In this document: positions 1 to 26,800 of the stretch, piece by piece
Position numbering within the stretch: position 1 is the stretch's first letter
Layout: each line of letters opens with the position of its first letter
Assembly: GCF_964204645.1 (NCBI RefSeq)
Contig: NC_134035.1
Location: 7,224,451-7,288,450 of the forward strand
Length of the DNA stretch: 64,000 bases
Direction: 5' to 3'
From: Tubulanus polymorphus
Taxonomy: Eukaryota > Animalia > Nemertea
Translations under genes and position numbers: made by a program
Notes under the pieces: model-generated
What the model saw: only the letters and a program-made list of their open reading frames with translations
The model's database searches: none
What the model was told of the DNA's origin: nothing

Positions 1-1593
1 GAAACAAAGCCACATTCTTCAAAGCGACTGTTTTCTAAGTAAATTGAGTTAGCTGTTCGTGAATGAAGTAACAAGGCAACTCATCGAGGTATTTGTGGGG
101 ACTACGATTATTCAAGAAGGTTTCATATTGTTTCTTTGAACAAAATTGATCACAAAGAGATGATATGCGCATATTCATCGGGAGCACGTAGCGATGCTCT
201 TAATGCAGGTCGGCATCTTTTGTTAAGTGCCAGTTTTTGGTGATATAGATGCCTCAAATCCGTGACCGTACGCAGCACATTGCTATCGTGCAAAATTATC
301 TTTTTATTGCTAGAGCTCGATAAAGAGAGCTGCTCTTTCTCTTATTCGGTTACGGATATTGGATTGTGAACGCGTATGTTCAAACTATATGATATTCTTC
401 GTGTAGATGTACGTGTTTTAGAAAGACAAATCAGAACTGTTAATTCGATGCCAGGTCTTCACAATTTCTCGGTAGATAAGATCGGATTGAAGTTTCTGAA
501 CAAATCAAACGACATTAAACAATCCCACGGAATATATTTTGATCTCGACGAGTTAAAGAGTCGGATGTTCAATCGGATTCAACACTTCTAGATTGAACAT
601 TGTCGAATAGATCGTTACGTAGTTTCCACGCATAGGTCAAAATCGTTTTGCGAAAAATATTAATGCGTGAAGATATCGACAACAGTTAGAGAGATTGCGA
701 GAAGAATGCATGGAATCGTGGGCGACGCGTACTTAACTATACGGGAAAATTCATAATAAAGAAAATCGAAGTGAATTTAGTAGTGTGAACTTTGCCACTT
801 ACGTCGAAGACGAACAAAGCCTCGTTTGAATGGAGATTTCGAGCTGTATGTAGGAGGCTGTCTCCGGTCACAGAATCCCGCTGTTTGTTTTCCGTCCGAA
901 TACAATAATCCCGCATATGATTAAATCCGATTTGCGGGGAATAACACAATAAGACTATATAAGCAGCCGATGCTCTAAAGCTAGGGACCTGATTTTATTG
1001 TCTACGAGCCATACAACGGTAAACTAGGGGGTCGGAGGAACCATCGATATTTACGATTGAGTCGATTCATGGTCAACGCGAGGTGTGTCGATTGAAAGGA
1101 AAGGAAAATATTTCGTAGAAAACGTTATATATCGATAAAGATCGTTTCGGCGGCTTGTTTGGTTTGAATTTGAGGATGGACGACGGTTTGTTTTTTAAAC
1201 GGCAGAGCAAATGCTTATATATCTATATCCCGTTCAAAGCACGTTGAATAAACATACGACGGGGAAACGTGTCCGACATGTGATCGTAATGTTTCATGAC
1301 TTCGGTATTTCAGTGAGCATTCAGCCTATCTTGAAATAAATATTCAAAAGTCGAGTAGTATTATAGTGTTGGCGTTGCATTTCCTCGACCATCTTTGACA
1401 GTGAAAACCGCAATAATTAGCAAGAGTACGTAAGCACTGGTCCGCTGCTGCAAGACGCCGCTTTGTCGCATTGAGTGCTAACGAAAACACATTGACATCG
1501 ACTCAAGACATTTACGCGGCTCAACCATCAGTTTAAATAGAATAACATCGATACGAATCTTATCCGCGGAATTTTCTATTCGTATATATTAAA

Positions 1594-4063
1594 ATGCAGT
1601 CGTCGGCTGTATTGAGATTGGAGCTGTTGCTACTGATGTCGAATAGTAAGTACTCATTATATTTCTTTTATCATTTTGATGTAAAAGATTGAATCAAATC
1701 GTGACGGATTAACAATCATCGTCTGCGTCTTAAAAATGCCTTGATTTCCGTGGTTTATATCTGGTATAGAATTCTTGTTTTAAATCTAAAGCTATGCGCA
1801 ATAGTAATGTGGGCGTGTAATTGGGATTGCTATATAGATGGCTCAGTTGATCGGTAGTTATAGTGGCATCGCTGTATAGATTATATCTATTAGAACCGAC
1901 GAAACGCTTGCGATCCGACTTTTGACGGGGAATACGGATCAGTTTCCTTTGCAACGACCATATTTCAATTTAAACAGTTGTAATTCGACACAAAAAAGAT
2001 CATAATCTAATATGTACTTCAATGCAGGCTTTTGGAGAGTTATTGTTGCGAGAATCGTTCTATTCACACGGACGAATTTGACTCGATATTTGACAGCTCG
2101 AGAAAAATTGACCGCTTACGACCACTAGAATTCGCATCAATTTCTCGGAACGCCGACATTTACTAGTTATTTGTCAATATTTTGTTACCAGGGCCTGAAG
2201 TTATTTACGACTTCGTGTGCCAGTAGGTTCTACCAGCACCTCTTCTGCAGTCTACTCTCTGGTCTAGTGTTTGTCAACTGTCTATGACGTAGTCTTGTGG
2301 TCCTGATCGACTTTCAGAAGTTCGTCTCACTCTCAAGCAATTTGTTTCAGTTTGCACGATATTTACTCTATTTTGTACGATATATAACCAATGTTTATAT
2401 TCTAATTTTCATCTAAATATGTGTCTGGTACGATACATTTGTGACGTCGCAGTTCCTGGCTGTCGTGGCCCCTGCCTCTACAACCAGTATAAGTTCATGT
2501 CCTTGACCTCAACCTCGGCCATAATATGGAACCTTAGGCTTGTTAGGCTTGTTAGCTCGTTTAAATGAAGCTTGTCGTAATCATTTGACGAATGATTACT
2601 CAGAGAACGAAGAATCAAGTTCAGCAGAACCAGGTTTTATTATGATTATCTCTGATGGATATCCTCGGTGTGATTTCTAGGTTCCGACTTTCGAAATTGG
2701 CATAAGCATTACTACCGATCTAAATTGATCAGATCGGTTGTTTTGAAATTATTGGAAGCGAAATGAGCTCTATACATGGAGTCTGAACCTGAACCGTTTG
2801 GAAGCAAATAAGATTTCAACATAAATAATTTTGAAAATTAATCTCCAGTCTGGTTTACACCACGACCAGCTGCACTATACAGATTCGGCGAGGTTTATTT
2901 GTGTTTATCTTACGGCGAAAAATCGGTTGAATAAAATACATACAGTACACAACCTGTGTCTTCAGTGAGGGCAATAGTGTTCTGGAAACTATGCTAGATG
3001 TTGCCGATTAAAACAAATTTCATAGAGATAATGTCAATGCTTATTAGCCTGAACTTGTAAGATAACAATAGGCGTTCGAGGCGTACGTGAAATCTGAGAA
3101 TCGTAAATACGTACATATAATGAAAATAAGAATGTCTTTCTTGTGCCGTGATAGCGGGTCGTGTCGTTTCGGTGAATTTATTCATTCGATTCATTTTTCG
3201 CATATATACTCATCGTATCAGCGTGGACTTAAAAGTGCATCATTTGTAGGAAGAAAACTTATAACAAATTTTAGTCCGTTAAACTTCGGGTTTCAAATTT
3301 GTGTTAGTTTACGTGTAACGACTTAATGAATTCGAATAATAGAATACTTCGGACTTAGTTCGCATGGGGTAAGCGCTGAGATATGAGATGGCTTTATTAA
3401 TGAGAACTTTCGTTTCTTTTTTGATATTTACAGTCGCTATAAACTCGTGTTCGGGAATATCGCCGTCGTCGGATAAACAAGTGATCGAATTGGATTTGCA
3501 ATACGGCATCGTGAAAGGATACAGTCCCTACGTGAAATTCATCGAACCACCGAAACCCTCGTGGACTGAAAAATGTAGCAGTCAGTCGGTCGTTAAAATC
3601 GATTTGTCCGGACCGTACAAACTGGTTCGTTTTTTACTGGACTATACCGACCGACCTCGGTTATGGACGTTCGACGTGTCGGATACTGAAATCGGGAACG
3701 GTTTTGGCGGACATTTCGTCAACGATTCTCAAAAGGCGGCAGAAGTGCAAATACTGAACCGCCAGCTTCGTGTTTATAGCAATGGTTTGCCCGGTTATCG
3801 AGATGCTACGATAAACGGAGGTTTCCTGATGAAAGTAGTCGACGGCGTCACGAAAAAGGGCAGTAAATTCATGCTAGAGGTTAGCCATGAACACGTGGCA
3901 TGGAATAACGGCAAAATCAAAGACTCAATCGATTCCAAATATTTATTCAAACAGTATCCCGGACCCGCCGATGTTTATGCTGGATTTAACCGAGTAGTTG
4001 GCGGAAGTTACCGAATCGGAAACGGACTTTGCCGAGCCCTTATCGTTCTGTTTAATATGCACG
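1594..4063 (+). CDS. Putative alternative 5' exons of SCUBE: signal-peptide exon 1594-1645 plus a 630-nt exon 3434-4063 encoding an unrecognised ~200-aa extracellular domain
   Basis: 1594 ATG gives MQSSAVLRLELLLLMSN, then A|gtaagt (phase 1). Pyrimidine-rich acceptor ttcttttttgatatttacag|TC at 3433/3434 (phase 1) continues IAINSCSG. The exon ends ATG CAC G|gtaagt at 4063 (phase 1), compatible with the first EGF exon at 12780. The ORF-track ORF 3388-4071 is this exon read through both splice sites. Confidence 0.65.
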
Positions 4064-4889
4064 GTAAGTGATAGAGTAGTAAATATCTTGTTTTAGGATT
4101 TAGGTACAGGCACAAATTTTCAAGATAAATCGATTCCCTCGCAGTTCAAAACGTTCCAGTTCTACCACGAATTGCCAAATCTCTCGTAGAAATGGACCTA
4201 AAATGGATTAATTGCTTGTGCATACTTTATAGGGATCTAGATTGTGATAAGTGATACAGATGTTATATTTGTTTTATCTTGCTTTGCGATAAATACCGGT
4301 TTCACACCTTAGAAAAAACGGTTTCATGAAAGTGTACCATAATCATCCTGCTGTTGTCCGCGTTTCAATAATTGTTTTTAGGTTTCGACGGACAAAATTC
4401 TTAGGAGTTTTAAGGAGCACTCGAATTTCTGCGATCTAATGTCCGTCATATTGTTGATATCTCCCATCCGACGGCCAGCCTGTGGCTACTAGTATAACTT
4501 TCAAATAATGGTCTCTGCGCAAGGACACTCGTGGTTGACATTCAGATCTATTTGTTTTTTTTAGTACAATGATTAGTTTGAATGGTTCTTGAACAAAAAT
4601 GAATTGATTTGAAATGGTTGATTGACAAACATTACTTAAAGATAGTTACTAGGACCTCGACACAAATGCACCTGAAGAAGATAGCAGAATACATGTATTT
4701 GTAATGTTGACTGAAACTCATCACGGAGTCTTTTGAGATGCGCGGTTACAATGATTTTCTCCATGTGCAAAATATCAGCATACACTGAAATAATTCATTT
4801 GTGAAATGTAGATTTGGAAATGGTCAAAATTCTATAGTTTATTGAACAATATTTACATACAGGTTTCAATGTTTTTACGGTGTAAATTA

Positions 4890-5790
4890 AAGTGACATCA
4901 CACTGAAGAAGCGTTTGGCAGTGAACGGTTCAATTGTGTTAGGTAACTTGCAAAAATCGGTTATTTTGTAGCAGACATCACAGCTTTCGTGGAATAATTC
5001 GGAAAAACTCAATTTCTCAGTTATTTTTGATTTTGTAAACCCAGTGAATGTTGAATGTGGTGTGAATCTCTCGTCGGGATCGATTAAGTTTGACCGATGG
5101 AGCCAAATATTAAACATTTTGCATTGTCCATATAACACGACACACGCGGCTAGAGACACATTTACATTGGCTAACAAGTCGTATTTCATACGACGTTGCA
5201 GAAGTTCTTTTGGCCAATTATCGCGGTGGGTTGGTTTCCGACAATAGCATTTCCCGCGTGCGTTGAAACTGTGGGTAATTTCTTTGTTGTAGCGCCAGGG
5301 GCCACTTGGTGCACTGATTTTTCTTTTCTAGTTCTTATTCTTCCTAAGTGCGTATGCCCGTTCGAACGCCATTCTCGACTTTTCGATTGTAGGATAAATG
5401 TCCCCATATAGTATTACAATGCTTCGATCCACTGGGCGAAATGTTTGAATACCATAGTCGTTATGGTAGAAATTTAAATGTGTTTTCAATAGGTTTGTAT
5501 TTTGCTGGTTTCACTACTATGGAGATTAATTCTAAGGCAGGAAAAATTCCTGATAGGCAAATTGAAGCGGTTGGTGGTTGTGGAGCTCCATCAAAACGGA
5601 ATTCCAGAAATGGTGATAGATACAGCTGAATACCGGCTCAAATGGAACACCCAAACTGCGCACATAAAAATACCACAAAAATCACGATTATATTTTCAAC
5701 GACGGCTCGAAACTTCCTCCAATTGTAGGATATCTCATCGCATACCTTTTATCATAAATATATGGTTTGTATCGATATCACGATTATAAT
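4890..5790 (-). mobile_element. Heavily decayed Penelope-like retroelement fragment (RT / GIY-YIG remnants)
   Basis: Frameshifted minus-strand pieces resemble PLE motifs: CVVLY..QCK, IGQT, ERF..H and LPNTIEPF (GIY-YIG end), with YNRDFCGIF (YIDD-like) upstream. Many stops. Confidence 0.4.
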
Positions 5791-6985
5791 GGAATCGTCA
5801 TATCACGAGGGGACTAGAAATGACATACGAGTTGAAATCCGATACGCCCGTAATGACACTAGTTTTCTCAGTGATTGTACGCACCGCGGTTCAAATTAGT
5901 CGAACTTTCGGGTCGTCAGTGCGATTTAGATCTTTGTTGCCTTCCCTACCACTCAATCGACGATAATTGCTGTCTGATTGAAATGAATTCGTCAAAGTCC
6001 TGCCATTTAACTGACATGTGCATACGCGGAATACAAATTACACGAAATATACTCCTTTAAAGCACCTAACTAACCCATCCGCTTTGGGCAGTATTTCATC
6101 GCGAATACAATGCGAAACGTTCGAGTGTTTTTCACTTTATAGAAACTGTTAAAAATTGTTGTCGCATTGGCTCTTACAGAAAGTTATTTTGTTCAAAAAT
6201 CGTCTGTCGTAATTTATGAATGCGTCAATAATTATAAGTTCGGTTTAATTGATAATCCGTGTACTGATATTTCAAACGGAGGAATGACAAATTAACGTTG
6301 TGAGTTCCAGTTACACCCAGTGAATAAAGCTTATTTTAGTTTGTACATGTAATTGATTTTGAATACGTCGGGCCAATCTTAAGATGTAAGACAGCACAAG
6401 CACCTGATCTGTATAACTATGCTATAGTGCAACTGACAAGACTTAGATAGATTTCAGATTGATTTTCACCATTACGGTTACTACGAACTACAAAGCAAAA
6501 CTAAAGCTTTAAAACAGATTTAGGCAAATTTTTGATTCTACTGATGTTTTGGCTGATGCTTTCGTGGGTGGACGAATTCATTAGGTTTCTTTTGTCAGAA
6601 CGTAGGTGCCCGTTCGCCGCTGGGTGATATACCAGCAATGAATTTCATTTCTGACATTTGTAGGCGGAGCGATGTATGTGCATCGTCATACGATTATTGT
6701 TAAGCAATTTGCACGGTTTTTAACCTATAGGCTACATTTAGAAAATACCATTGACGCGAATGTACGTAATAATCGCAACTCTTTTCGCGTGAGATGCATT
6801 TTGATGGGCTTCATGACAGTTTTTTAATTCAGATTTCTTTGTCGCCGGTGTGGTCGCGCGGTCGTAGAATTAGCATTCTTAGTTACTTGAATTTACGAAA
6901 GCCGCCGGTTCTTTAAAGTCGCAGTCCCCCTTTCTATGGGACTGAAGACCACCCATCAGGCCATCAGAGTAACATGTTTCTGATA

Positions 6986-7208
<223 letters not shown>

Positions 7209-9375
7209 GAATTAGATGCAATAGTTTAATTCCATTATTTTCTTTTTCAATTTCACCTATACGATTCTATGGATCTAATAGGGATGCCGGGAAAAGAAAG
7301 AAAAACTGCCGGCTGAATGAACCCTCAAAGTCTAATTTGATCTTGCCCGCACAGAAGTAGACTCGTCGAGTGAAATAAACCGGCGAAAAATAAAAACAGA
7401 CTACGACACGATGAAAACATGGCTTTCATAACTTTTGCAGACATTGTTTTTTTTTTGTTTTCGCAAGATGTGTGTTAGTATCATTATGTGGAAACTGCGT
7501 ATGCAAATGAGAGCGATCATAGCGAGAGTGGAGGATGAAATATTCGGATTTCCTGAGTGGACTTCGATTCACGCGCTCGTACGAATCAAGAGTCGTCAAG
7601 TGACGTATTATGGAGCTTAGGCTTATTTATAAGGGCCTGGAAATAAGTCAAGAGTCATTGAAAAGAAACAACTTCTTAGTATAAAACGACGTCATTATAT
7701 TATATTTCCTTCTACGCTTTGTACCCGATAAAATTGTTGTTGTGATTTCATTTTCGCCTTTTACCCCTTTCCGGAAAAGTGCGTTCATGCATATAAACAT
7801 CACACCGCAACCAAATAGACCCCTGTTTCTCGGGGATAATCTGTATAGATTGCGACATAATGTTATTCCTATTTCTTGAAAAAAAAACCCTTACCGCTTT
7901 CGTGGCACCCGTTAAAATATTAGCGATTACAGCAGTAACTTGAATCTGCCTCAAGGAAACAGGGACGTGATAGAAAAAAAACATTTCAACGAACATTTTT
8001 GGCAACTTCATTTTCGTGAATCCTACATGCAGACCTTCTACTATATTAAGATAGATATTTCTATACTCCATGTGCGGCTAATGATAATGTCGAAGGAATT
8101 TCCTCATTTTGTCCGACACATTCATAAAAATTGAATTATAAAAAAGGGATTTGTTTCTTTGAATACAACTGTATCTTTCGATAGATGTGAAGTTATATTG
8201 CCGGATATAACATTGGAACAGGAAAATTTTGTTGAAAATGTTTGTTCGGTCGGTTTAACAGTAGAGCCCTGTGTTCTATGTAGAACTGCGCAATATGAAC
8301 GCGTCTGTTAGAGTCAATATGATCAATGTACGAAATACCATTTTTAAGCCAAGAATGTCTGCGACTTTGAGGTAATTGATATACAAAATACATCGAATAG
8401 CATCAATTCAAATAAAAACTATAGTTATAGTGCGAATAGTTAATATCGTATAGCAGGTTTCCATTAGCACGCTAGCCAAACTGGACACTATAGGATCGAC
8501 GCATCAGGCGAGTCGTTTTTCTACTGAAATTATACGATACATTTATTAACGGATTATGATCGGTCGAACCACTTCCAACTTGTCGTTTTTACGGGTAAAT
8601 GTTTTTTTACAATGTTGCTTCAAAATCGACGATTGAATGCCGTCAATAATGCACCGTCGGAGACATGCCAGTCATGTCAGCATCTCCTCGAACCCTCAGC
8701 TAATTACGGATTTAATTTCCTCATTTGTGCACACGTCTTTTTGTAAAAATGGATGAGAGAAATCGAGTATGGGGCTTGAACACCTTTTTGCGCGTATCCT
8801 GTAGACTGCGCATCTAACGTTACCAAGGGTCACGACTCTCATCGGTTTCTTTGTTGTAAACAAGACTTATATCAACACTCATTGGCCAGACTAAACCTAG
8901 AAATCTGAACCGCCACAGAAAAGCGACCGCTGGTTTTTTCACGTTATCTGTTATTCCGATATACTGCATTCGTTTTAGAAGAAAGTCGGGATAAATAGTA
9001 TTTATTGTGCGAAGGCATGTCATTGCGACACACTCGAGACCCTGCTAATCTAATCCTCGCCAGTCGGCGCACTCAGTGAAAATAGACAGTCAAGTACGGT
9101 CGGGATTAGAAATAACCGCAGACGAGAGAGACAGGGACTGAGAACGCGTGTTTACATCATCGTGCAAATAACAAAACGCATTTTACTATAAAGAGAACGC
9201 CGAAAATTGCGTAAAGTCGACCCCTGCGAGGAAAGCGCGCAGACACGCCAGTAACACGTATGAAGCTACCAATCAGCTGCGGGTAATAAACCCTAAGTGT
9301 CGATACAATGAATAAACTACATTTTAGGACGGTGCTGCAAGGAAACTATGCTTGAACGCAGTCTCGCTAAGAGCG

Positions 9376-12300
9376 ATGTGGACTCATATTTTACTGGGAC
9401 TTAGCTTGCTCTGTTTATTTCGTGTCGTTACGCCGGGACGGACTTCAAGAAAACCGGGTAAGTCGTCGCATTTTCACACGAACACCAGCGGCCCCGTTAT
9501 CGCTTCCCGTATCGGGGACGACGGTTTCGTAAACATTCGTCTGTTCATCGGGTTAAAAGTCACTGTATTTGAAATCTGATATCAAATTATGATGACTGAA
9601 ACAAATATTGAGCGAGTGTGCGAGTGTGCGTGTGCGTGTGAACTGCGTACCGGTGATTTGGTTTTGGGTGTATATATATCGGTTGCAAATGTATCAATGA
9701 TTAAGATATGAATTTTATTGATAATCATCTTTATTGTCAGAGAATATTCTTGTATGACACATACAAATATAAAAGGATACAGTTTGTATGGACATTTCCA
9801 CACACATACGAATGCAAAATCTGTAGAATTGATTACATATAATGATCTGATTGATAAACTAGATCAATGAATTGATTTAAGAAATTTTAGTTTGTTCAGA
9901 AATGTTGATGAATCGATACTATTGAGGAGGTTTCTCGTAAATTTGGCAACTTTATATGCATGGTATCAAACGAAGTAGCCTAAAGGAAATTAATCGAAAA
10001 CTTTCTTAGAAAAGGTTTAGACATATCGACGGATTGTTAAAACCATCAGTTTGCTCATAGTACGAATGCGGTTCAGACGGATTGAAGACCATTTGTCGTC
10101 AATGTTCACATTTACCTGTGTTCTCGATTTCGGAAGGAGTTTATCCCGGTCTCATTTTGATTCGCTTATACGAAACCGGCACCAGTTTTGCGATTGCTGG
10201 GTTAGATTTAGTTAAGTTCCTATTTATCAAACTCGATTGGTAAAATATCAACCCATGCATAACATTTCATCTACGATATCTTAGACAATAAGTATCGAGA
10301 TTTCGAGATTTTTTGTTGTTTAAAGTATAAAGGAAATAATTGTTTGAAATCGTTAATGCCAGATCTGATACTTCACATTTAAAGTGAGTTGGTTTAAAAA
10401 AGAATAGGTAAATACTGCACCTCACGTAATGGAAAACAATGTCTGAATGTATCCTTCATTTCTACTTTGACTCTCAGGAATTGGCTCTTGAAGTGAAACT
10501 TTGAATAAAGATGACGTTTAATGATTTCAAATCTTTTTTAAAGCGAGATCTGTAAAAATAAATCCTGAAATTAATGATTTTGATTTCGTGATGGTAATTA
10601 TTTTAAAATGTTAACCTTTATCAAACTGTGATTAATCAGATTCTGAGTGATTTATGTTTTTTTCGATCAGCGCTGTATAGATTTATACGGTATCGATACA
10701 GACGTAATGAGTATGAAGTAGCGCGGTTCAAACTAAACCCGAGCCGTGTTCAAAAGTGCGCGATATTGGCTCATTCTATGAAAGAAAAACCCAGTTGACC
10801 TTTTCGTTGACCTGTTATAGATGTATATCAATTTCGGCGGAGGGTAAAGCTAAATGTTTTGCGTAGAATTTCGATAGGATATTAGCGCGGTGAAGAGGCT
10901 CTATACGACATGGCAACTTCGAGTCACCGATCACGCAAACGCACTTGACTATCTCTCTATACGGGTGGTATCAATGTCACCTTTTCACCCATCGTATTTC
11001 GAGTGTTATTTTTTTACAATATGTATATACTATAACGAAAGTTGAGCTACATTTACGAAGAATTCTGTGTCATTGTCAATACATATATGTTCACTAACGA
11101 CGTCGTCATCTGTTGGAATGATTCTGCGAAAAAAACGGTTGATTTTATTACCTGAACATGATATGCCTTTACTCACCGATTCCGCGGAAGTGTTTCCAGT
11201 ATTGAGGACCCTTATGCTTGTGTTTTAATGACAATGACAGGGCCCTTTACGTTGCGTCATTAATGATACAAAATAATGACTCATCGGTCACAGTTAACCT
11301 CGCAGTACTAATCAGTTCAGCGAAGTCCTCATGATGGTCTAATAACGAGTCGTCCAGGTCTGTTGAAGGAGGACGGAGTAGGTTGCGTCCTTTTGCTCAG
11401 CAGTCGCCAGCTAGTTGTGGACTGAATTCGTTTAGATTATGAAAGTTCAATTGCAATTATCGATTTAATTTGAATTAATCAACTCGAGCGAAACATTCTA
11501 ACTGTATTTTCAAAATTGAAAAATATTCGTGTTCACTTTTGAAAACGAAGTTGTGCGATAAGATTGCACGTATCGCGTTCCTTATTTCAAAACAACGCTT
11601 TATAAAACAAATAGCTTCTAGTTTAAAAACCAAAGATACAATTCTACACACCTGACAATGATCTCTAGGGTGTGATCGAAACGTCGTGTATTTTACATTT
11701 TAGATTTTTTGAATAAATAAGTTCTCGATTTTGAAATAAGTTCAATTTGTGTGGGTTTTTATCCGTTCACCATGTTTGAGTGTGGTTATCGTACTACTAT
11801 TTTCCGTGGTTCCTTTTCATAATTTAGGGAGTTAAAAAAACAAGGTATTCTACAATAAGTGTCGTTCCGATTTTATAATGTTCTATTAGTCGGCCGCTAG
11901 TCTGTCACTTTCACCGATTTCAGATAGATACGTGCGTATCGTAACTACGTAAACAACAAGAACCGACTGCGGTGTGGATTAACCGCCAGTAAAAACAGCA
12001 AAATCTCACCAGCGAACAGCTGCCCGTTAACTATTCGCCCTCGTTCACCGAAACCCAAACGCCTTCACCAATCGTTATCTACGTTTTATCAAAGAACCCT
12101 ATATGCCATGCGGCATCTTTCAAGTTTCACCGCACCTATGAGTTAAATTTGATTATGCTATAAGGATCATCCGATATATCCTTGGGATGGTTGGAAAATT
12201 GTTTAAAATACATTTGAAGAAAATATATATACACATACTAGGCGTAATGCACGTATGCGCAACTCGCGTTAATGTCATCGCGTACAATTTCAACTATTAC

Positions 12301-15300
12301 ACTGTTTTATATGGTAAATCGCCCGAGACAGCGATCGGGATTTTGTCGGTATTTTCTCATTGATCTCGGCCACATTTATTAATTCGATCATTATATTGCG
12401 CTTTCTCTCGCTCTGCGTAGATTAAACTGTTTTCGTTTCTCAGACGTCGCGGCAACCCTTGGAAGTGTCGACGTATATAGTACTATAGTTTCTGACACCT
12501 TTAACAGTTAAAACCCTACCGCAACGCGAATTCATTGTCGGTCGGTTAGCACTTTGATCAGACGAGACCGAGTACAGTTCGTTTAATGATATCGTGTTTG
12601 TTTCTGTAAACCTGCGTTCTTGATAATTATTACACGTCCTTTCTGCTTTGACTGCCAGTGTCGCCGCTTAAACGAAGCCGATACGCGAGCACAAACTAAA
12701 ATCATCTTCAATACAATTGAATTTATTTTCAATTCATGGACAAAAATCAAGATATTCCAGCGTTATTGTGTTTTTTTAGAGAGAAACGAATGCCTCACAG
12801 ATCGACACAAATGCCACCCGGATGCCAACTGCTCAGACACCAGACGGTCCTATAGATGTCGCTGTAAGCAGGGTTTCTATGGAACAGGCAAAATATGTAA
12901 AGGTACACGCGTAACGGGGAAATAATGACGACAAAGATAGATGACGTGTTTTCACTGTTCACCATTATCGTTGTAGACGTCTAGACAGGGGCACATCTAG
13001 AGTCCGGTCTGATTCAGAGAGTGTTGCATCTTTAAGATGTCACATCATAATATGAATTAAAAGGGCAACCGATCACCCCAGAAAGCATTACCTCATTTGA
13101 GGAAGCACAGAGGATATGCTTATGAATTTAAACTTTTAAAGTACTCAAGTTGATATTCTATAGTTAATAACTTTCAATTTCCAGGGGCCCTTGTACCATC
13201 CCCTTGGATCCACCGCGGCTAGATTTAGTTTGCTATGTCGTTGTAGATGCAGATGAATGCTCTTATGAAAATGGCGGCTGTGTGCATAGCTGTAACAATA
13301 CGCATGGCGGATATAACTGCTCGTGTTGGGACGGATTTGTGCTAGCGGACGATGGCCATAATTGCATAGGTAAGATGAGTTCTATTTCATAGGTAGTTAT
13401 CGGCTGAATGTTTAACGTTTTTAAATCTAAAAATGTTCAAAACTAACATTTCGAGTTTCGTATTTTATTTCACGATCTATCACTGTTTTATATCGGGTAC
13501 TATACATAAAGATTTAATTTCCGCGCGCGCGTGGAGGTCGTGTGGGGAAAATATAATCTTTATCTGAGTTTACGCAAAAATGGCAATAAAACAGCAAACA
13601 AATAACAACAAAACACCGAGATGACACAATGTATAAAAATATATTCAAGGTTAAAAAGAGCAGCAGTTATCGAAACTGTTCTATCCACATTATTACTGGC
13701 GAGGACATACATAAGTATATTTCAGTAAATTCAAGATAGCAGGTTTATAAAAATTGAAAATATTTGAGGAAGACGATATATCCAATTCATCAATATCATA
13801 TGATTGTTTTTGAAGTGTGAAACGTACGACATACCGCAGAAAACTGTCTAGATTTCTTTAAAAAGGATACATTTTTCCTTCGATACAGATGAAAATGAAT
13901 GTTTGGAAAATAAGGGTGGCTGCGAGCATCAATGCATTAACACAATCGGTAGTTTTTTATGTAAATGTAATGTTGGTTATACGCTGAGTCAAGACGAACG
14001 CACTTGTACAGGTAAATTCGAGCAAACTTATCACTTTTCTATGATCAGTAATGATGGTATTCACTGTGGTTTCAATAAACTATAAAAAATACATTGAGAA
14101 GCTAAAATCATTTTTCCTCATGTTTTTTTTCTAATGAAGCGGGTACCTGGTGTCAGGAGAAATTGGATTGCAAATTTCCTTGTACGAATGCCATCAAATG
14201 CGCCTGTAGAAACGGTTTCGTAATGCAGAAAAATACTAAATCATGCAGACGTAAGTATCTATACAAAAAGTCTCCTTCATGGTTCAATTATTAATTACGT
14301 TGTTATAACACTCTGCATTAAACGTATGTTTTAGATATATTATTTTTTGATTAAACAATGTTAGAAATTAACGATAAAGATTAAATGTGATTTGTATCGA
14401 GGCTGTAGCGACCCGGGCGTTCACAAGTGTGCCGACATCGTCTTTAAATTGTTCAAATTTATTCATTTTCGTGACGTTCATCACCTATTTTTTGAATACT
14501 TACCTCTTTTAGGGTCTGGCTATGAATATAATTTTGAAATTGGTTCGTGAAGTTTTTAATGTTCTCTTCTGCAGGAACCTGTGCCGCCGGTAACGGGGGA
14601 TGTCAACATTTGTGTACGGATAGTGTGGCGGGTCCTGTTTGTAGTTGCGTTGATAAATACATGTCCCACGGATCTCTATGCATAGGTAAGTCGTGACTTG
14701 TGTCAGCGCACAATCCGAAACACGGGACCGAATCACATTTCTGGCTTGTGCCTATGACTGTGCGCCAAGGTATTTATTGCGTAACCTAATGCAATCGATT
14801 AGAGCTGAAAACAACTGAATCGACTGATGAAAATGTTTGGAACTTTTATCTAAAAATCAGACCATTTGTTAAAACATTTATTTAGTCATTTATTTCGTTT
14901 ATGATTTCAAAATGATTGAAATACTGAAAAAGACTGAAATACAACTGATTAATGGCAATTTTCAAATAATATTATTCGGTTTTAGCAACGTGTGCCATTA
15001 AGAATGGTAACTGTGATAGGCAGTGTGGGGATACGCCACAAGGTCCGCAATGTTCATGTCCGGAAGGATACATTCTACACCAAGATGGAAAAACCTGTCT
15101 GGGTAGGTTTTCAAGATTAAACAATAAAACTGTCTTATCGCGACGTGCCAATTGTATCGTATTTCGAATAGATCTTTATTCATAGATGATGTTCATTTAT
15201 CCAGCATGTCAATAGCTAGTTTTTGTTGCGAATGAAAAATCTTACTTAACATTAATTCAATACAGATATCGACGAATGTAAATCTGAAAATGGTGGATGC

Positions 15301-18300
15301 AGCGACGCGTGTGTGAATACTGACGGGGGATACGAATGCGTCTGCCCGAACGGTTACAAAGTCGGAGCCGATGGAAAAACGTGTCAAGGTGAATATTTAT
15401 CGTTGTGACAATTGATACAATTCGTTTTCGAATTCCCGAGTCGATGATTGACGAGCCGAAGTCAAAACATGTCTAAACGGCAGTCTATTAGTGCGTCTGC
15501 GTTAATGTCTGCGGTTTTATTTTGTTCAGGGGTTGATTGATTTTCATCACGCGCCAGTCGAACCGGTGACATTTTCACTCGACCCGAGTCTCGCCGGGTA
15601 CCGAAAAGTCATTAGCTTCAGTCGTTTAGTTTTACCGCGTCTCGATGCCGTCGATCGGAAACTTCTATTTCCAGCCATTGATCTATATCATCGGTTCGTT
15701 ATTCGTCGATTCCGTGTTTTACTGTCGCTGCCGTTGCGCAGACTTGGCAATAAATCGCGGATTTAAGTGATTGCGGGGGCGACGTAATTAGTCTCTATTC
15801 GTGTTTCTGTCTAATGTCACCGGTTCAATTTTTCTTCGCTTCAGAACAAGGCGTGCACTCAGTGTCACGACATTTCATTTTAAACTTAAATCAATCATAA
15901 AGCTTTTGAATCAAATGACCTTTTCACAGTCTGAGTCGATTTTAACACTTTTGACCATTCTATGACAAGTTCTTCACGGATTAGTATCGTCTATTCCATT
16001 TTGCCATTTAAACCATGAAATATCCACTATAATATATATTTTGATATGAATACTGAGTTGTTTCTGAGTCAAGTAAAACTGGATTCAGTTTTGACTTAAA
16101 TTGCAATTGCACTAAAACACTTTTTTGAGTTGTCAACTCTCGTGCGAAAGTTGGGTAAATTTGGCAGAAACGCGATTTTTGTTCTGATTCGTTACAATGT
16201 GTCGGGTATATTTTACAGATATTGATGAGTGTTCGAAGACGTCTGCTTGTGATCATGTTTGTAATAATACAGCTGGAGGTTTTGTATGTACGTGCAACAT
16301 CGGGTTCGCACTCTATGGTAAAATCCATTGTGGAGGTACGTGTAACAAATGTCGATTTGATTTCCCTCAAGGGTGGAAGTTTTTTGGTAATGTACGTCCT
16401 TCAGACACCTGGATATCGGGAGTGAAATTTTACAGCACAATTAAGTACACGAGGAAGTATCAATCTAACAACCCAATGTGGCAAGCAAGTAATCGCGCCG
16501 AGCATTCTGCGTGGTTTGCTAATGGTTACTTCGCTACCACGCTTCAATTTCTTCTACATTTCAATTAGATTATAGTCAATTTTTCTTGTTAGTTGATTCA
16601 TTTCCAGTAAGATCTCTACCTAACACTGACTGTTATAGTTGATGTTTTATCGTTTCAAAGCCTTGTTTTGTAAAAGAATGAACAATATAAATAGGTTTGG
16701 GAGCCGAAAAATCCAGTTAAAATTTCATTGAAAATGAATTAACGTTCCCTATACGAATAAAATGAGTTATTATTGCGCTAGTTGATATGTGCCGAGACCT
16801 CATCACGCCGGATGTCGGTCCGCCTTGTAACCCACCGCGACGTCATTCACTGCGACAGCAGCCACGATTGCATCGCAACCAACATGTCCTTGACTTGCGA
16901 CGCGATGCGACAGGGTCGGGGTGGAGGATAATAAGTATTTTCACTGAAATCGATTCCTGAGTCAACTTCGTAAAATGCATATGATCCCAGCTCTGCTGAG
17001 TACGTTTGTTTATTTCAATGACGGTTTGCTTTTTTATTTAGACATCAACGAATGTACCGTAAACAACGGTCGATGTGAGCACGATTGCTTGAATACAGTT
17101 GCCAGTTATAAATGCTCGTGTAAATCCGGATTTCGTCTACATCCGAACGGCAAAGACTGTGTAGGTACGATTGCGCTTAGGAAATATCTATAAGATTAAA
17201 ATTCGTGACAAATTCATATGATGTTTCTAAATATTGACGAAACACGTAAAGTAGATAGAAATGATTCGATAACTTCAAAAAACATTTAAACGTTAAGTTT
17301 TTGTATTCTGGAGATGTGCATACATTCACAATATTATAGACACACTGATTATACTACTCTACATATAAGTCTCTTAAGATATATAAAAAGGCTTTAAGAA
17401 TAGATAGGAATCTTAATATGAATTGATTCACGCAGAGTAAGGAAGGATTCAGCCTCTGAAATATGCGACTACAAGGCGCATAATTGACATGTCAAATCGC
17501 TAGGATATTTTACGAATTACCGCATAATGAATCACCGTTTTCTATAACAGCGATGGAAAAATGTTTGCCGCTGAAAGCCCCGCCGAAAGCCAAAATCAAG
17601 TGCAATAAGGGTCAAGGTCAGAGCCAGCATTGTAAACTTACCTGCCACAGTAACGCGCATTTTACGTCGGTATCGCGAGACGGGTATGAATACACGTGCG
17701 GCAAAGCGACGAATTACGAGTGGAAAAATAACGAGAACGTCACGACGCTTCCTTCCTGTTCGGGTAAAAGCATTGCTCGAAATTAACTAAATAGAGCCCC
17801 AAAATTGAGAGTATTTAGAAGAACACAATGTTTCGATTCATTTTCTATATTCATCCAGGAGAGTCGTAATGCGAAATCAGGCATTAAAAGGAAAATTAAC
17901 TCTAAACTAAATAAAACCTAAAAGCGACTGAAAACTCAACAAATAATATAAAGCACTTTTCAATGTGGGTATTGCAAAGACTAAACGGCCGCTAACGCAC
18001 GCACCAGATATAAGGAATATAAGATAATAAGGAAAGGAAACGGAGAATTTTGGGAGAATTAGTAAAAGAAATAGACTGTGGTGTAAGATATATTTGATTG
18101 ATAGAATACATTATGATAGAAATATCAGGTTTGGTTGTTTATGCATTGCGGTCTTAAAATGATGAGGCCTATAAAATGTAGTTGAGGAACTTCTTCTGAC
18201 AATCTGACCATCAATTGATTTGTAACCGAAACGTATCAATTTGTAGATATATCGTCATTTCTTGCTTTCTAATGATCTATGAATTCGTTCGATGCGAATG

Positions 18301-21300
18301 TCATCATCAACTAACATTTCTACAACATCTCCTTGTTAATCTATTTCAGAGAATGTAAATGCGCCTAGTATAACACGTCGTGCAAAGTTTCTCTTCCTGG
18401 CCGACAAGTGTCGACTGCGGCAGCGTAGCAAAGATAAATTTATCAAAAATCTCTCGCAGAAGATCAAAAGTAAGTTTTTTAACAGCAAACTGCCAATCTT
18501 TTATTGCTACTACTGTTTCCTACTTGGTAACTTTGTCCTTTATTCAAAAAAGTTAGATAGTCCAGTCTTAACGATTAAGAAGTGACGCGCACTCACCGTG
18601 ATCGAACCCGGGTATCGTACGTAGAAGGCAAGCGTGCTAACCAATAGACAAACAGAATTAGTTATACTGAGCATTTATTAATCGTTAGAAATATTTGTGG
18701 TTCTTTTTATCGAACGCACGTGAACTCAATTTGTCAGTTCCGGTTGGGTATTCAAATTTCCCTCTTTCGAAAACTTTGCGGACGTTGGTAAAAGCCGTTA
18801 TCCCTACAAAAAGCTCCTAACTTCCCTTGACAGTCCAATGTAATTTGGCTCCATCATTTTGTTTCACAGAGCTGCCGCTGTGGGCCGAGTGTTGTCCCTC
18901 TGCGATTGGTAAGAAGAGACAAACACGATGCAGCCACGATTTGTGTCGCGTGAACTATGTCAATTTGCAATGCGGTACGAAACGGCGGCGATTCCGACAG
19001 GTTTATGCAGGGAAGAAATCTAAACGGGCCGTCGTCACTGCCGAGTTTGAGTTACAAGTAAAACCACCACTTACTACGGGTACATTGTCAGACAATAATT
19101 GAAACGAAATTTCTAAGATCGTTATGAAAATAATGAGTACATGTTCACCTCGACAAAAAAACACGCATTTATCAGCATAGATATGAACTTCGTCAATGAT
19201 ATGATACAAAATCTCTTATAGGTGATTGCGATGTTGATTGTGTTGCCAAACAAACAAAAAGACGCATAAAGAAAATAATCAAACGTCTGCGAAGAATCAT
19301 GGACAGGGAACAATTTTATATAAAGTTAGTATGTCACGAATAAGTCTTGCATTTCGATGGCTAATGTGAATCTTATGGTGGCCGATTCTGGCCACACCAA
19401 AATATTTCTAAAGAGCTGTTTACGTGGGGTCTACTTCTGTTTTCTCGCGCGACAAAGCTTAAAGGAAGAGACAGGAGAGAGTGGTTTAAGCTGCCCATCA
19501 CTTGTCTTGTCGACCCATCGTTCATGGTTTCGAATCTTTATAATTCATGCGCGGAAAACGAAGAAACCATGTGAGAATTTTCTAATCGCGCTTCTAGTCG
19601 TACAGAAAATCTTGGCCCGGGTTAGAATTAAATGCAATGTAAATAGAAAATTGATTCGCTTGTATCAACGCCTTTCTTACTGTCGCATAATATTATTGTT
19701 GTGTATCACGGAAATTGTTGATCCTACAGATTCGGTGGAAGTGAATACAGGGTGTCGCGAAAATCGTTCAAAGCTGACAGAATGACGGCCATATGTAAAC
19801 ACGGATTTGTCCTGGTCGCTGGAAAATGTGGTAATTATTTTTTCACTTATATCATGACATATTTATCTGGAACGTAGGTAGGCTTGCATCTCCAAGGGTT
19901 CGTAAATAGCTGATATTTCTCCTCAAGTCATTTAATTTTTTCCTTCAGTCGCTTGCAGTGTCAGTTATTACTACGACATGCAAACTAAAAGATGTCTGCC
20001 ATGTGAAAGACAAACTTACCAAGACCGAGAAGGCCGGCTGGAGTGCATCGCGTGTCCTCAAGTGGGCTTAAAACGAAATGATACATCAGGGCTGTCGACC
20101 CAAGTCGCCGACTGTGGTGGTATGTATTTATTAACAATCCATACTATCAACCGACTACATCGTTACCGTTGAATGGATTGCATTATTTCACAGGTCAATG
20201 CGGCCCTGGTTACTATTCCGTCAATGGATTCACGCCTTGTACGCCTTGCCCGATCGGATACTACCAGTCGGAATACAGTCGCACCACGTGTACTCCTTGC
20301 AGTAATGGATTTCTTACGGCGTCTGTTGCTTCAACTGGGTTTCACGACTGTAAAGCAAATGGTATTCAATTTCCTGTGCGCTAATGTTACGAACGTTTGT
20401 GTTTAATTTATCAAATATAGCTTAGGTATATGCTTTCTATGTTCTAGCGAATTGAATATTGATTTTGATTTTCAGAAATATGCCTACCTGGTAACTTCTA
20501 CGATAGATTTACAGAAAAATGTCGAAAGTGCCCACGTGATCGGTTTCAGCCAAACAGCGGACAGGACTACTGCGAAGCTTGTCCCGCAAAAACAATGGCA
20601 GATTTCGAAGGCTCAACAAGCAGTTCTCAATGCAAAGGTAAGGTTTCGAATAGGGAGAAACACAGTAGATAATTGAAAGTATGTAAAAAAGCAGTTGGCA
20701 GCTATAGGGGTCAGCAGCCATATTCAAGAAAGTTGTCTAACTTAGTTGGATACTGTATAAGATCATGAGATTATCAAATAGTATCCCAGATAATTTCATC
20801 GTAAATTATTTCATCAAGCCAAAATACAAAATAGGTCGCAAAATTGGTTGATTTTGATTTGGTTAACTCGATCTTTGTGTAACTGTATCCTTGATTCTGC
20901 ATACATATTAACTATATCAGCGTGAAATCTTGTGTCCTACGTATACAGACAGACGTTGCGGTGGTAAACAAGGGAAATATCAGGGATACATACAGAGTCC
21001 GAACTATCCCGGTGATTACCCGATAGATGTGACGTGTAAGTGGAACATTGTGCCGGAGAAAGGGCGCCGTATACTGGTGATTATACCCGAGATATATCTA
21101 GCTAAAGAAAACTGTGAGGATTCCTTAGTGATGAGAAAATCAGGTAACCATAGAATATAATTGTCGATTTAGGCTATTTTAAAAGCATCAACTTCAGACT
21201 TAATAAAGCTTGTGGATTGAGGTTAACAACCTATAAGTTCAGTACTAATCTATAACTTATCGATTAGTACTGAATTTTTCTCATAAATTACTTTGACGAT

Positions 21301-22270
21301 TTTATCGCTACGTGCATTGATTTTCTTACTCAGTTTCGCCATATTCGGTGTCGTCGTATGAGACGTGTAAATCGGTGACAACTCCACGAGCATTTACTGC
21401 CCGATCGAAAAAATTGTGGATCCAGTTCAAATCAAATTCGAATAAGACTGCAGCAGGATTCTCTATCCCTTACGTGATGTTTAACGGTAAATATTGGCTT
21501 ATTTTTGTAAAAGCTGTTAACCAGCTGGCCCGAGTACACCCATTTGTATAATAAACCAAATAGTGCGAGATATAAAAAAATGGTCCAATGGTCGAAGTAT
21601 CTTATCTTTTTGCTCAATTGAGCCGAATCCCGACATCGATTTATTACTCTTGTTTTATTTACAGAAGACTATCTGGAACTAATCGAAGATATCGTGCGCG
21701 ACAGTCGTCTTTACAGCTACAATCACCACCAGAAAATCTTTAAGGTGCATTTTATCATTTTATCCAACCCCGATTTATTTGATTCTTCGCGTTGAATTGA
21801 GGAGTTATGAGTTCTCTGAAACTTTCTTTGATCTCACGATCGCAATCTGCATTACTACTTGTCTTGTTGCAGCTGTCGATCTGCTGTCTGTACCCTCTCC
21901 ATCAAACGATCACCTTTTGAATATCGTGGCCTGGACACATTTTTTACCAATGTTGAATGTCTGCCTGAAATTGATGGTTCAGACGCCCAAATTCATCAAC
22001 AAAGAAAAATGTCCGGAGTGCGTAAAATGGTGAATGTCCACCCAACGCCTGAGGAGTGTTCACAGACAGAAAATTGATAGCTGCATAAAAAGCGTCTTCA
22101 TATTTTTACAAACTTTTAATTTTCAGAATCGGAATCTCCTTGGTTCGTTACTAGATGTGATCGCCAAGCCGTACACCTATTTCAACTATTCGAATTCGTC
22201 GAAAAAAATGTTCCCCGAATCGTTCATCAAGCTACTTACGCCCAAGGTTCTCAGATTCTTTCAAACGTGA
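9376..22270 (+). CDS. SCUBE: Signal peptide, CUB and EGF-like domain-containing protein (SCUBE), ~990 aa, 22 coding exons
   Basis: Exons: 9376-9457 (signal peptide); EGF exons 12780-12902, 13247-13369, 13889-14011, 14140-14250, 14575-14685, 14986-15102, 15266-15388, 16219-16335, 17042-17164; spacer 17551-17763, 18350-18469, 18870-19079, 19222-19324, 19730-19830; Cys-rich repeats 19949-20119, 20194-20361, 20476-20637; CUB 20949-21143, 21334-21486 ([11 protein letters not shown]...[10 protein letters not shown]); C-terminus 21665-21744, 22127-22270 ([17 protein letters not shown]...[15 protein letters not shown] signature). All GT-AG and phase-consistent; total 2973 nt. Confidence 0.93.
11645..11790 (+). 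mobile_element. Penelope-like terminal-repeat remnant with degenerate minimal hammerhead motif
   Basis: tacacac-CTGACAA-tgatc...gatc-GAAACGTC-gtgta (11645-11690). The downstream part is similar to the inverted repeat at 36170-36350. Confidence 0.5.
18588..18655 (-). mobile_element. tRNA-derived SINE head / pseudo-tRNA
   Basis: Reverse strand reads gtctattggttagca (A-box-like) ... gggttcgatcacgg (B-box-like). A related head sits at ~37915-37962 (+). No clean cloverleaf. Confidence 0.5.
19374..19625. mobile_element. Degenerate copy of the TATGG...CCATA (IS3EU-like) non-autonomous element
   Basis: Left end tatggtggccgattctggcca, internal ttttctcgcgcg unit, and decayed right end cgtacagaaaat...ggcccg resemble the copy at 36848-37317. 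Confidence 0.5.
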
Positions 22271-23835: not shown

Positions 23836-26800
23836 TTAACTGGGAATCAGGTTACTGGTTAAAGTATCCACGTCACCGCGGCGTCTGCCGTTAGTATTCC
23901 TTTTGTCCGGTTTACCGTCCAAATAATCATCGACGACAGATAGTGGAATGATCGAGCCGCCACAGCAATTATGAGTTAACGGATTATAGGTGTCGCTGCC
24001 ACAGCATCTTGCGTTTGCTAACTGTAATAATTAAGCATAAGAAAACGTTATCTTTGACTCAGTAGTTTTACACTAGTGAACCGCAACACACGTCCTGGCC
24101 CCAGGTCTTCCGTTATTGAAATACAATCAATATCCGTAATTATGCAATTGCTCTCTTTACTTGAACATTTTTTCAGAGAACAAATTTGCCCGATCCAACT
24201 CAAATTCAATGCAAAAAATACCATTCTTTATAACGCCAATTACGTTATAACGCTATGTTTTCCAATGGTCCCAACAGTGGCATTCTAAAGAACTTTTACT
24301 GTGCCTCATTTTCAATCAACAGCGGATTCTCTGACTCCTGGATCCGAACATTGAACATTGACATTTCTACTTGGTGTTTGCTACAGATTGCATTCCTGTT
24401 TCATGGAAATGCAGAGGAAACTCGGAAGAGTAGCTACTTTAGTGGACCTCATGAATCCTCGCTGGAAGTGGAATCCTCTATTGCCACGAAGGTTACCCAT
24501 TGTATATAGAGCTAATTCACGACTTAACTTGACTATAAATTTTACCGAAGATCATGAAAGTAAATTAAATCCAACAATTGAATATTGAATATTGAATATA
24601 ACAATTGAATAGGAGCTGATAGATAAAAAATTTACAAACCTTTCGATCGTGTAATTTGTAATGACAACACATTTTCTCGTCGGAGTCGTAAGCTTGCAGG
24701 CCACAACACGCATCGTTTTCTCCTATTTTCAGTACTTTGTGCCCACAACACATGTGAGTCAATCGGTTGTACGGTGTCAAATAGCAACAGCTGAAAAAAA
24801 ACATGTTCAGAAGAAATGAATGTAACGTTAAGTCTTTAACGTAAAAAGCTCCACCATGTTCAAAACAATACAACGTGTGAAATTAACAAGTTCGGTTTCA
24901 CTCAAAAATAAATCGATTTCGGTTTTTATCCTAACCTCGTTCTATCGTCTTCCGGGTTTATATCGACTATTTCACCGTGACAACAAATCGACGAAGTTGA
25001 ATTTACTTGAGATCCACCGCAGCATTCCGAGTCCTCGTCAGCCTTCTCTATCAAGTTCCCGCGGCAACACAAGTGCGTGTTATCATTGTAGGCCATGTGA
25101 CCGCAACAGTCCGTGTTTTTACCTCGCGATTGCAGGATATTTCCGCAGCAAATATATCCCGATTTGCCGGCGATTTTGCCGTTGCAGCAGACGTGAGATC
25201 TGGCATGGGAATCAGTTTTACCGCAGCACCTGGAATGGGAGCCGTAGCGTTTGCGGACGATTTTTTCGTTGCAACACAAATAACGCCGCGAGTCGAATGA
25301 AACCCGACCGCAGCATTTCATGTAACGGTGCTGTCGTTTCAACGCGTTGCCGTCGCAGCACATCGCGATTCTTGTATCGTAAACGTTGATGTCACAGCAT
25401 TTATAGAAATGCTTCATGTTAGATGGTCCTGAAAAAAATCAATATCGAACCGTGTTAATTTTAAGATCGACACAAATAGATATAGTCAACGATCCGATTG
25501 AGCAAGTCAAAAGCACTTGAGATTTTTCATGCGATAATTATGCGCTATTTCGGAGCCCTTTTCAAAGAAATTGTCAACTCTTAGAGTGTCGCATAGAATC
25601 TTACCGGGACGATGTCGCACGCGGTCTTCACAGCAAAGGTTGCCGGTTTTGTTAAACAATATACCCGCGCAACAGCCGCTGGTGGCGCTGGTATTCTGCA
25701 CAACTGTGTCATTACAACATATTTCTGTAATCGGTTCGAACGTCGTCGCTCCGCAACATTTACTCGTCGGGTCTTGTCTCGTGTGCACCTTTCCCTGACA
25801 ACAAAGCTGTCTCACCGAATCGTAAGCTTCACTTCCGCAACAAACTAGAACACGAGTTAATGCATGCATTGACAAAACTGAATTACCAAGGGTGCATCTA
25901 AAGTCCAATTCAGGGAGGGGTTTACCACCAAAATAGGGCGTATTATGTAAATGAAAGGGCACTCCGACATAAAGTTCATCGGAATATGTAAAGTCAATTT
26001 TGGAAATACGGAAAACAACAAACCTACGACTTTTAAACTCTTTTAGGTGTCAGCTAAGTATTTTTCATTTTCACGTGACATTTCAGGGCAACAAGTGACA
26101 TTTTAGGGGGATTCGCACCCCTTGCACCCTCCCATTGGATCCGCCCTGATTATTCTATCGTTAAAAACTGATTTTTAGGAGTCATCATTGTATCCTATTG
26201 ACACCGAATACAAATTTACCTGTTTCGCGGGTATCCTTGTGTTTCAGTTGGCCATTGCAACATACGTAACTACTCGGGTCGTATTGTTTCGGTCCGCAAC
26301 ATCGCGCACCCGGGATTCGATCGTGCACCTGACCGGCGCAACAACGCTGCGTGTAATAGTTGAAACTCGATCGGCCACAGCACGTGCTGTGACGGTCACC
26401 GTTCCGTGCCAATAAATTGCTACCACAACACAACGAGTCTTTACTCAGGTACTTGCTTCCAGCACAGCAACTGTCTTGTACGTTCGGGATGAGCGGTTCG
26501 ATGTTTTCATTGCAGCAGAATGAAGTGGACGGATTAACGAATCCTGCTCCACACCAGTGAAATCCTCTATACTGATACATATAATGAAGATATCCAATGT
26601 CTCCGTATTGGCTCATGGCGGCCGAGACAGAACTGGAGAATGAATAGAAAATATTAGTTAAAAATAAGACGATTTGTTTCAATACACGTTCACTTCTGCA
26701 ATGATGTACGCAACATTCATTAAATAAATTTAATAAACATCATCGGCCAACCTATAGAATAAGTTGATTTCTATGAAATATCGCTGAGCCACATAACAAC

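Follow-up and report, generated by a model that had tools for sequence, protein, structure and literature searches.

Is the form of SCUBE known from vertebrates, in which the signal peptide leads straight into the first EGF repeat, also the form made by other animals? SCUBE proteins have been studied almost entirely in vertebrates, where they help to release lipid-modified Hedgehog and act as co-receptors (BMP/VEGF), and to our knowledge vertebrate SCUBE1-3 carry no domain between the signal peptide and the EGF repeats. The question is raised by a stretch of 64,000 nucleotides from the nemertean Tubulanus polymorphus (assembly GCF_964204645.1, contig NC_134035.1, positions 7,224,451 to 7,288,450 of the forward strand), hereafter the window, whose positions are used throughout. 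The window contains a SCUBE-like gene, whose secreted product combines EGF repeats and cysteine-rich repeats with a CUB domain. An initial annotation of the locus proposed two alternative first exons for this gene, one of which would add an unrecognised domain of about 200 residues. We consider it highly probable that the gene is SCUBE-like with an N-terminal lectin-fold domain, and that this arrangement is old and vertically inherited.

All searches were made with the exons taken one by one, and not with a joined, spliced protein. Six exon open reading frames (ORFs) match the Pfam families EGF_3, EGF_CA, FXa_inhibition or cEGF, so that multiple calcium-binding EGF-like repeats are present. 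They are followed, with the order kept, by two exons matching Ephrin_rec_like (E 5e-10 and 4.5e-13) and one matching CUB (E 1.6e-10) at 19978-21157. A 1190-aa homologue (P0211) aligns to the window exon by exon as far as 22264 by tblastn, and further EGF exons were found in this way. RefSeq names most of the domain-bearing animal relatives SCUBE1, 2 or 3, and it is on these names and on the order of domains that we putatively assign the gene to SCUBE. At the 5' end, the two ATG-containing hydrophobic signal exons of the initial annotation, at 1594-1645 (exon 1a) and 9376-9457 (exon 1b), hold in the sequence with their phase-1 gtaagt donors. The same is true of the 630-nt exon at 3434-4063, which is in phase with exon 1a and whose phase-1 donor fits the acceptor at 12780. 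The acceptors themselves read ...tatttacag, ending at 3433, and ...ttttttag, ending at 12779. In the long isoform, exon 1a contributes the first half of the signal peptide. The domain exon codes for the end of the signal peptide, with cleavage probably after CSG, and, at 3457-4062, for a concanavalin A (ConA)-like beta-sandwich domain of about 200 residues. The difference of 200 aa between the two proposed isoforms, of about 1190 and 990 aa, follows from the exon lengths.

To determine whether the domain exon is joined to the rest of the gene in transcripts, the junctions 1645/3434 and 4063/12780 had been set beforehand as a test. Three sequencing runs (X1, X2 and X3), none recorded as RNA for this organism, were mapped over window 1300-6900. 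X1 spans the whole of that stretch in one piece and resembles genomic DNA. Coverage by X2 is limited to 1487-1673 and 3357-4478, taking in the exons and skipping most of the intron sequence. One X2 contig joins 1575-1645 to 3434-3587 (71 + 154 letters), skipping 1788 letters with GT..AG ends. A second X2 contig runs through 3835-4063 and then continues into a loose end of 29 letters, AGAGAAACGAATGCCTCACAGATCGACAC, which is identical to window 12780-12808. The domain is found only once in the 268-Mb assembly, and a retrocopy is therefore not the source of the spliced contigs. Both test junctions are thus present, from which it follows that the long isoform, comprising signal exon, extra domain and EGF repeats, is expressed, and that the domain exon belongs to the SCUBE-like mRNA and not to a separate gene. 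The expressed product runs from the signal peptide through the ConA-like domain, the EGF repeats and the cysteine-rich repeats to the CUB domain. The vertebrate pattern of a signal peptide followed directly by EGF is not what this isoform displays.

The extra domain was described in the initial annotation as beta-rich and unrecognised, and both descriptions were borne out. No Pfam family matches the domain at E<=10, and there is no match in NCBIfam or among PDB sequences. Among 56 relatives searched singly there was no Pfam match at E<=1 beyond noise, and a profile built from the relatives found nothing in Pfam, NCBIfam or PDB sequences. Neither the domain nor the 56 relatives matched hidden Markov models (HMMs) of the lectin families Lectin_leg-like and Lectin_legB, or those of Laminin_G_1/2/3 and the thrombospondin (TSP) N-terminal domain (TSPN). 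Relatives are nevertheless abundant: an exhaustive HMMER search gave 274 representative clusters at E<=1e-3, 78 of them at E<=1e-10. In their alignment the common motifs are WT..(I/L)(G/S)DS...G.G, AE.QI and YAGFNRV..G..R.GSG(L/V). N178, G188 and G190 (residue numbering of the domain model) do not vary, and D76, G82, E96 and R179 hardly vary.

An AlphaFold2 (AF2) model made on this alignment is confident, with a predicted local distance difference test score (pLDDT) of 93.8 and a predicted template modelling score (pTM) of 0.91. It is all beta, with 15 strands, and has the two-sheet sandwich (jelly roll) of about 200 residues that defines the concanavalin A-like superfamily. Foldseek returned at least 500 matches at E<=0.001, headed by the carbohydrate-recognition domain of ERGIC-53/LMAN1 and legume lectins (E 2e-7 to 1e-5, TM score about 0.5). 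VIA, a structure aligner independent of Foldseek, found 21 chains at Z>=8. Z was 10.0 for the sandwich at the C-terminus of GH32 enzymes, 8.5 for ERGIC-53, 8.1 for the C-terminal lectin-like domain of thrombospondin, about 8 for GH16 enzymes, PL7 lyases and VIP36, and 7.5 for the Gas6 laminin G-like (LG) domain. A search of the ESM Atlas added a Laminin_G_3 cluster at TM 0.63. The only matches from a feature-based search of a protein atlas were phage portal clusters at 0.86-0.87, below the meaningful level, and were rejected as noise. As modelled, the extra domain is a member of the concanavalin A-like fold class that lies outside the named sequence families of that class. The L-type lectins (ERGIC-53/LMAN1, VIP36, legume lectins) resemble it in their all-beta jelly roll and similar size, with a best Foldseek E of 2e-7 and VIA Z 8.0-8.5 over 167-168 residues, but identity is 7-10% and there is no HMM match. 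Because the GH32 C-terminal sandwich scores as high as the L-type lectins or higher, no single ConA-like family stands out.

The range of the domain was established by scanning the long HMMER matches against Pfam and looking up their names (about 40 names). Directly after the signal peptide, and followed by EGF repeats, Ephrin_rec_like repeats and CUB, the domain is found in SCUBE-like proteins of crinoids (Antedon, Anneissia), a sea star (Asterias), hemichordates (Saccoglossus, Ptychodera), a brachiopod (Lingula), a bivalve (Dreissena), insects (Ischnura, Gryllus, Cloeon), a nematode (Soboliphyme) and a stony coral (Oculina). Partial models with the domain come from Priapulus, Mizuhopecten, Nucella and Timema. 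A Logan contig of another species (4183 nt) encodes the complete domain order in a single ORF of 1190 aa. Among bacterial proteins, M4 thermolysin-like peptidases carry the domain N-terminally and FG-GAP/Calx-beta and RTX proteins internally, Microcoleus and a Thiotrichaceae metagenome-assembled genome (MAG) providing examples of the latter, and it also occurs as small PEP-CTERM proteins (cyanobacterial); the named bacterial range consists of the two proteins from Microcoleus and the Thiotrichaceae MAG. All of these bacterial contexts are secreted or surface proteins. The initial annotation had pointed to similar motifs in bacterial secreted proteins and in other invertebrate SCUBE models, and both are indeed found among the relatives. 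A different arrangement was seen in Rotaria sp. Silwood2, where P0135 / P0189 (699 aa) carry a tandem pair of the domain at residues 43-225 and 231-442; a crude EGF motif count for P0135 was 0.

A phylogeny against the bacterial homologues had been called for in the initial annotation. In a maximum likelihood tree (quick search, LG+C20, unrooted), animal and bacterial copies part on one branch, with a Shimodaira-Hasegawa-like approximate likelihood ratio test (SH-aLRT) value of 92. A core of 24 animal rows is supported at 98, and inside it the coral, crinoid/echinoderm, mollusc-like and ecdysozoan rows cluster roughly by taxon. The nearest relatives of the window domain are animal, at 44-52% identity, and bacterial relatives have 27-38% identity. 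A pair of cysteines, in the EKC.. and GLC columns, is present in 27 of 27 animal-type alignment rows and in none of 29 bacterial-type rows; this covarying pair, Cys40 and Cys192 of the 202-residue model, presumably forms an animal-specific disulfide. The exon structure is also shared. Another genome (L002) likewise encodes the domain in a single phase 1-1 exon whose donor falls at the same codon, and in a second genome (L003) the phase-1 acceptor matches and the donor, g|gtaat, lies at the same codon as read by eye from the translation. In other species the domain gives half-domain ORFs (e.g., P0014-16, P0030, P0034), the exon being split there. A symmetric phase 1-1 exon is a classic sign of exon shuffling, and its recurrence in L002 and L003 fits an old shuffled module. 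These observations fit the domain having joined the SCUBE-like gene before the cnidarian-bilaterian split, and the order of signal peptide, domain, EGF, Ephrin_rec_like and CUB is the old, vertically inherited form of the protein in these animals. The sharing between animals and bacteria leaves room for one very old transfer at most, in either direction on an unrooted tree. Loss of the domain in vertebrates is the simplest reading, the vertebrate lack being taken from established knowledge.

Several points pull the other way. We infer that X2 is RNA from its spliced contigs and not from its record, and each junction of the long isoform rests on one short contig at a depth of 4-6. In the spliced signal peptide (MQSSAVLRLELLLLMSNIAINSCSG) a short hydrophobic core is preceded by an Arg and a Glu, which makes it a weaker signal than that of exon 1b or the version starting at ATG 3388. 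The lack of any vertebrate name among the matches looked up comes from a survey that was not exhaustive and is weak evidence for absence in vertebrates. Fold matches at Z 8-10 show a common fold and say nothing about function. Further points bear on the proposed isoform switch: truncated models aside, no model inspected from another species lacks the domain, and no isoform of Cloeon, Gryllus or Oculina is cleanly domain-less, the candidates there being truncated models. In two other genomes, the 10-kb flanks around the homologous exon lie within introns longer than that and do not extend to an EGF exon.

The proposed switch depends on exon 1b. We scanned the 64 kb on both strands (128 kb) for mini-ORFs of 15-45 codons running from an ATG to a GTRAGT donor. 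Only 2 of the 34 found have a hydrophobic core; of this pair, the one at 9376-9457 ranks first, and it alone lies on the plus strand with a phase-1 donor. By rough arithmetic, about 0.05 such mini-ORFs with the right strand and phase would be expected by chance in the 8.7-kb intron. Exon 1b lies within a local maximum of GC content (0.45-0.47 at 8751-9500), with a CCAAT motif approximately 100 nt upstream. The observed/expected ratio of CpG is 1.26 at 38% GC over the window, and since there is no CpG depletion, the ratio is uninformative as a promoter mark. The same figure suggests that there is little or no germline cytosine methylation in the 268-Mb genome. Judging from the sequence, we lean slightly towards exon 1b giving a domain-less isoform from an internal promoter by joining EGF exon 1. 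The product would have a vertebrate-like N-terminus without the extra domain, and the two promoters, if exon 1b is used, would yield a SCUBE-like protein with or without the lectin-fold module.

The alternative, that the gene has a single real N-terminus, makes only the domain-bearing isoform, and contains at 9376-9457 a chance open frame in the 8.7-kb intron, is a plausible one that we rate somewhat lower. All full-length relatives inspected retain the domain, as this alternative expects, and two short upstream ATGs precede 9376. Against it are the rank of exon 1b as the best of the two hydrophobic mini-ORFs, its correct strand and phase, and its position in the GC maximum downstream of the CCAAT motif. 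A still fuller scenario, in which an ancestral eumetazoan SCUBE gained the module through one ancient interdomain transfer, the chordate or vertebrate line lost it, and the exon 1b promoter toggles it in this animal, is unlikely to hold in its entirety.

What the domain does can be proposed from its fold and its contexts. We tentatively suggest that it would be a binding module outside the cell, with a glycan or matrix component as the likeliest ligand, because the majority of its fold neighbours are carbohydrate-binding or carbohydrate-cleaving proteins, because the bacterial relatives are all surface or secreted proteins, and because conserved polar residues are located in loops. The near-invariant D, E, N and R in those loops may resemble lectin sites. 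Such a module would tether or target the SCUBE-like protein at cell surfaces, in the manner of the TSPN domain of NELL proteins and thrombospondins. It is about as probable that the domain serves instead in protein-protein contacts or oligomerisation, or as a propeptide-like chaperone. The ConA-like fold also binds proteins, with LamG, TSPN, SPRY and botulinum HCN domains among the fold matches; in the bacterial M4 peptidases the domain is N-terminal to the FTP propeptide; and there is no match to a lectin family HMM. Yet modules that bind or act on carbohydrates make up most of the top fold matches, and the PEP-CTERM context also speaks for carbohydrate, since PEP-CTERM proteins are linked to exopolysaccharide-producing bacteria.

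The ORF at 3388-4071 could also be taken for an independent intronless gene, lying within the first intron of the SCUBE-like gene and encoding a small secreted lectin-like protein. An ATG and hydrophobic codons open the ORF, a TGA follows 5 nt past the donor, X2 coverage at 4128-4371 lies beyond the donor of the domain exon, and stand-alone relatives of the domain are found in corals (e.g., Stylophora, 259 aa). But the hydrophobic start after ATG 3388 is the polypyrimidine tract of the acceptor read as protein, many of the relatives of approximately 230-290 aa are ORF calls on a single exon of genomic contigs, and the domain orthologues in other animals are fused to EGF-CUB proteins. As the main form a nested gene is ruled out by the X2 contigs, in which splicing enters the domain exon at 3434 and leads from 4063 on to the EGF exon, and as a reading of the ORF it is very improbable. 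Judged by sequence, ATG 3388 may open an alternative N-terminus that brings a signal peptide of its own, or may be there by chance; its use as a start has neither spliced nor unspliced RNA support in the mapping of X1-X3 over 1300-6900.

Least probable of all is a recent gain of the domain in this lineage through bacterial horizontal transfer or retroposition, the unit acquisition entertained in the initial annotation: it would explain a long uninterrupted exon, far longer than its neighbours, and bacterial relatives reach 32-38% identity, but it is ruled out by the combination of closest relatives that are animal, animal copies forming one group apart from all bacterial ones, a Cys pair missing in bacteria, a single exon that recurs in two other animal genomes and is split in other species, and one architecture shared from Cnidaria to Ambulacraria, Lophotrochozoa and Ecdysozoa.

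The mapping also produced observations that stand apart from these readings. The X2 coverage beyond the donor (4128-4371, with bins to 4478) is at exon-like depth inside intron 4064-12779; an acceptor-like ttttag ends at 4096, just before the segment 4097-4478. Unspliced read-through past 4063 would stop at the TGA at 4069-4071, giving a domain-only secreted product. X3 covers introns broadly, and its contig at 3270-3545 is unspliced. In another X3 contig, 3086 is followed directly by 17 letters matching 3408-3424. The stretch passed over, 3087-3407, has GT..AC ends, which are not those of a canonical intron, and either a deletion allele of 321 bp or an assembly artefact may account for the join. 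At 6964-7221 there is a long (TA/ATAT)n microsatellite.

Returning to the long isoform with its old, inherited lectin-fold domain, comparison with known systems would place it in the SCUBE family with one addition. Like vertebrate SCUBE1-3, the protein has calcium-binding EGF repeats, a spacer, Ephrin_rec_like repeats and one C-terminal CUB domain in the same order; unlike them, so far as is known, the long isoform has a ConA-like domain of approximately 200 residues between the signal peptide and the first EGF. NELL1/2 and the thrombospondins are likewise secreted, with calcium-binding EGF repeats that an N-terminal ConA-like sandwich precedes, and chicken NEL and the C-terminal lectin-like domain of thrombospondin are among the fold matches of the domain (Foldseek rank 26; VIA ranks 19 and 36). 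In contrast to those proteins, there is no TSPN or Laminin_G sequence match, VWC and TSP repeats are absent, and CUB comes last in the order of domains. The bacterial exoprotein domains are true homologues, sharing the motifs WT..GDS..N.G.GGD...AE.QI and YAGFNRV..G..R.GSG, but they are without the animal Cys pair, occur in other architectures and lie on the opposite side of the main branch of the tree.

Features of the gene are collected in Table 1. The genes around it are of other kinds. Just downstream of the SCUBE-like gene, on the minus strand at 24929-26682, there is a galaxin-like gene, in which three di-cysteine-rich ORFs match Pfam Galaxin_repeat (E 4e-28 to 1e-18). On the plus strand, an intronless ORF of 353 aa at 33976-35037 encodes a rhodopsin-type G protein-coupled receptor (7tm_1, E 8e-21), and 52767-60925 contains exons of a TRPC-like channel, with ankyrin repeats and TRP_2 (E 1.4e-22).

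Table 1. Features of the SCUBE-like gene of T. polymorphus, in window positions
Feature	Position	Strand	Description	Basis
Exon 1a, first coding exon	1594..1645	+	52 nt: ATG + 17 codons + 1 nt (MQSSAVLRLELLLLMSN); phase-1 donor gtaagt at 1646	Sequence and X2 contig
In-frame ATG and hydrophobic codons just upstream of acceptor	3388..3433	+	Lies in the polypyrimidine tract	ORF 3388-4071, sequence
Domain exon	3434..4063	+	630 nt, phase 1-1, then gtaagt	Junctions in X2, homologues, AF2 model, fold matches
Exon 1b, candidate alternative first exon	9376..9457	+	82 nt, ATG, good predicted signal peptide, phase-1 donor gtaagt	Sequence
EGF exon 1	12780..12902	+	Phase-1 acceptor common to both proposed N-termini; EGF_3	EGF_3 E 1.2e-11
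Remaining SCUBE-like gene	12903..22264	+	Further EGF/cEGF exons, spacer, Ephrin_rec_like cysteine-rich repeats, CUB, C-terminal tail	

A full-text literature search found no paper describing an N-terminal lectin-like domain in an invertebrate SCUBE. A study of annelid Hedgehog components reported single Scube homologues and drew no conclusion on their role from domain composition (PMC9695228). The SCUBE architecture described here is widely conserved yet undescribed, and its domain family is unnamed although its fold is known. SCUBE-like proteins of many phyla carry a confidently folded extra lectin-type domain that is unnamed in the libraries, and its 274 representative clusters from animals and bacteria make a case for a new domain family. 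Comparisons of invertebrate and vertebrate SCUBE proteins based on domains have so far left a fifth of the protein out of account. We regard the result as a moderate step in annotation and evolution and not as a new kind of system. It supplies a testable idea for how invertebrate SCUBE may be tethered or targeted. If the switch at exon 1b is true, T. polymorphus would offer a natural pair of isoforms with which to ask what the module contributes to Hedgehog or BMP-type signalling.

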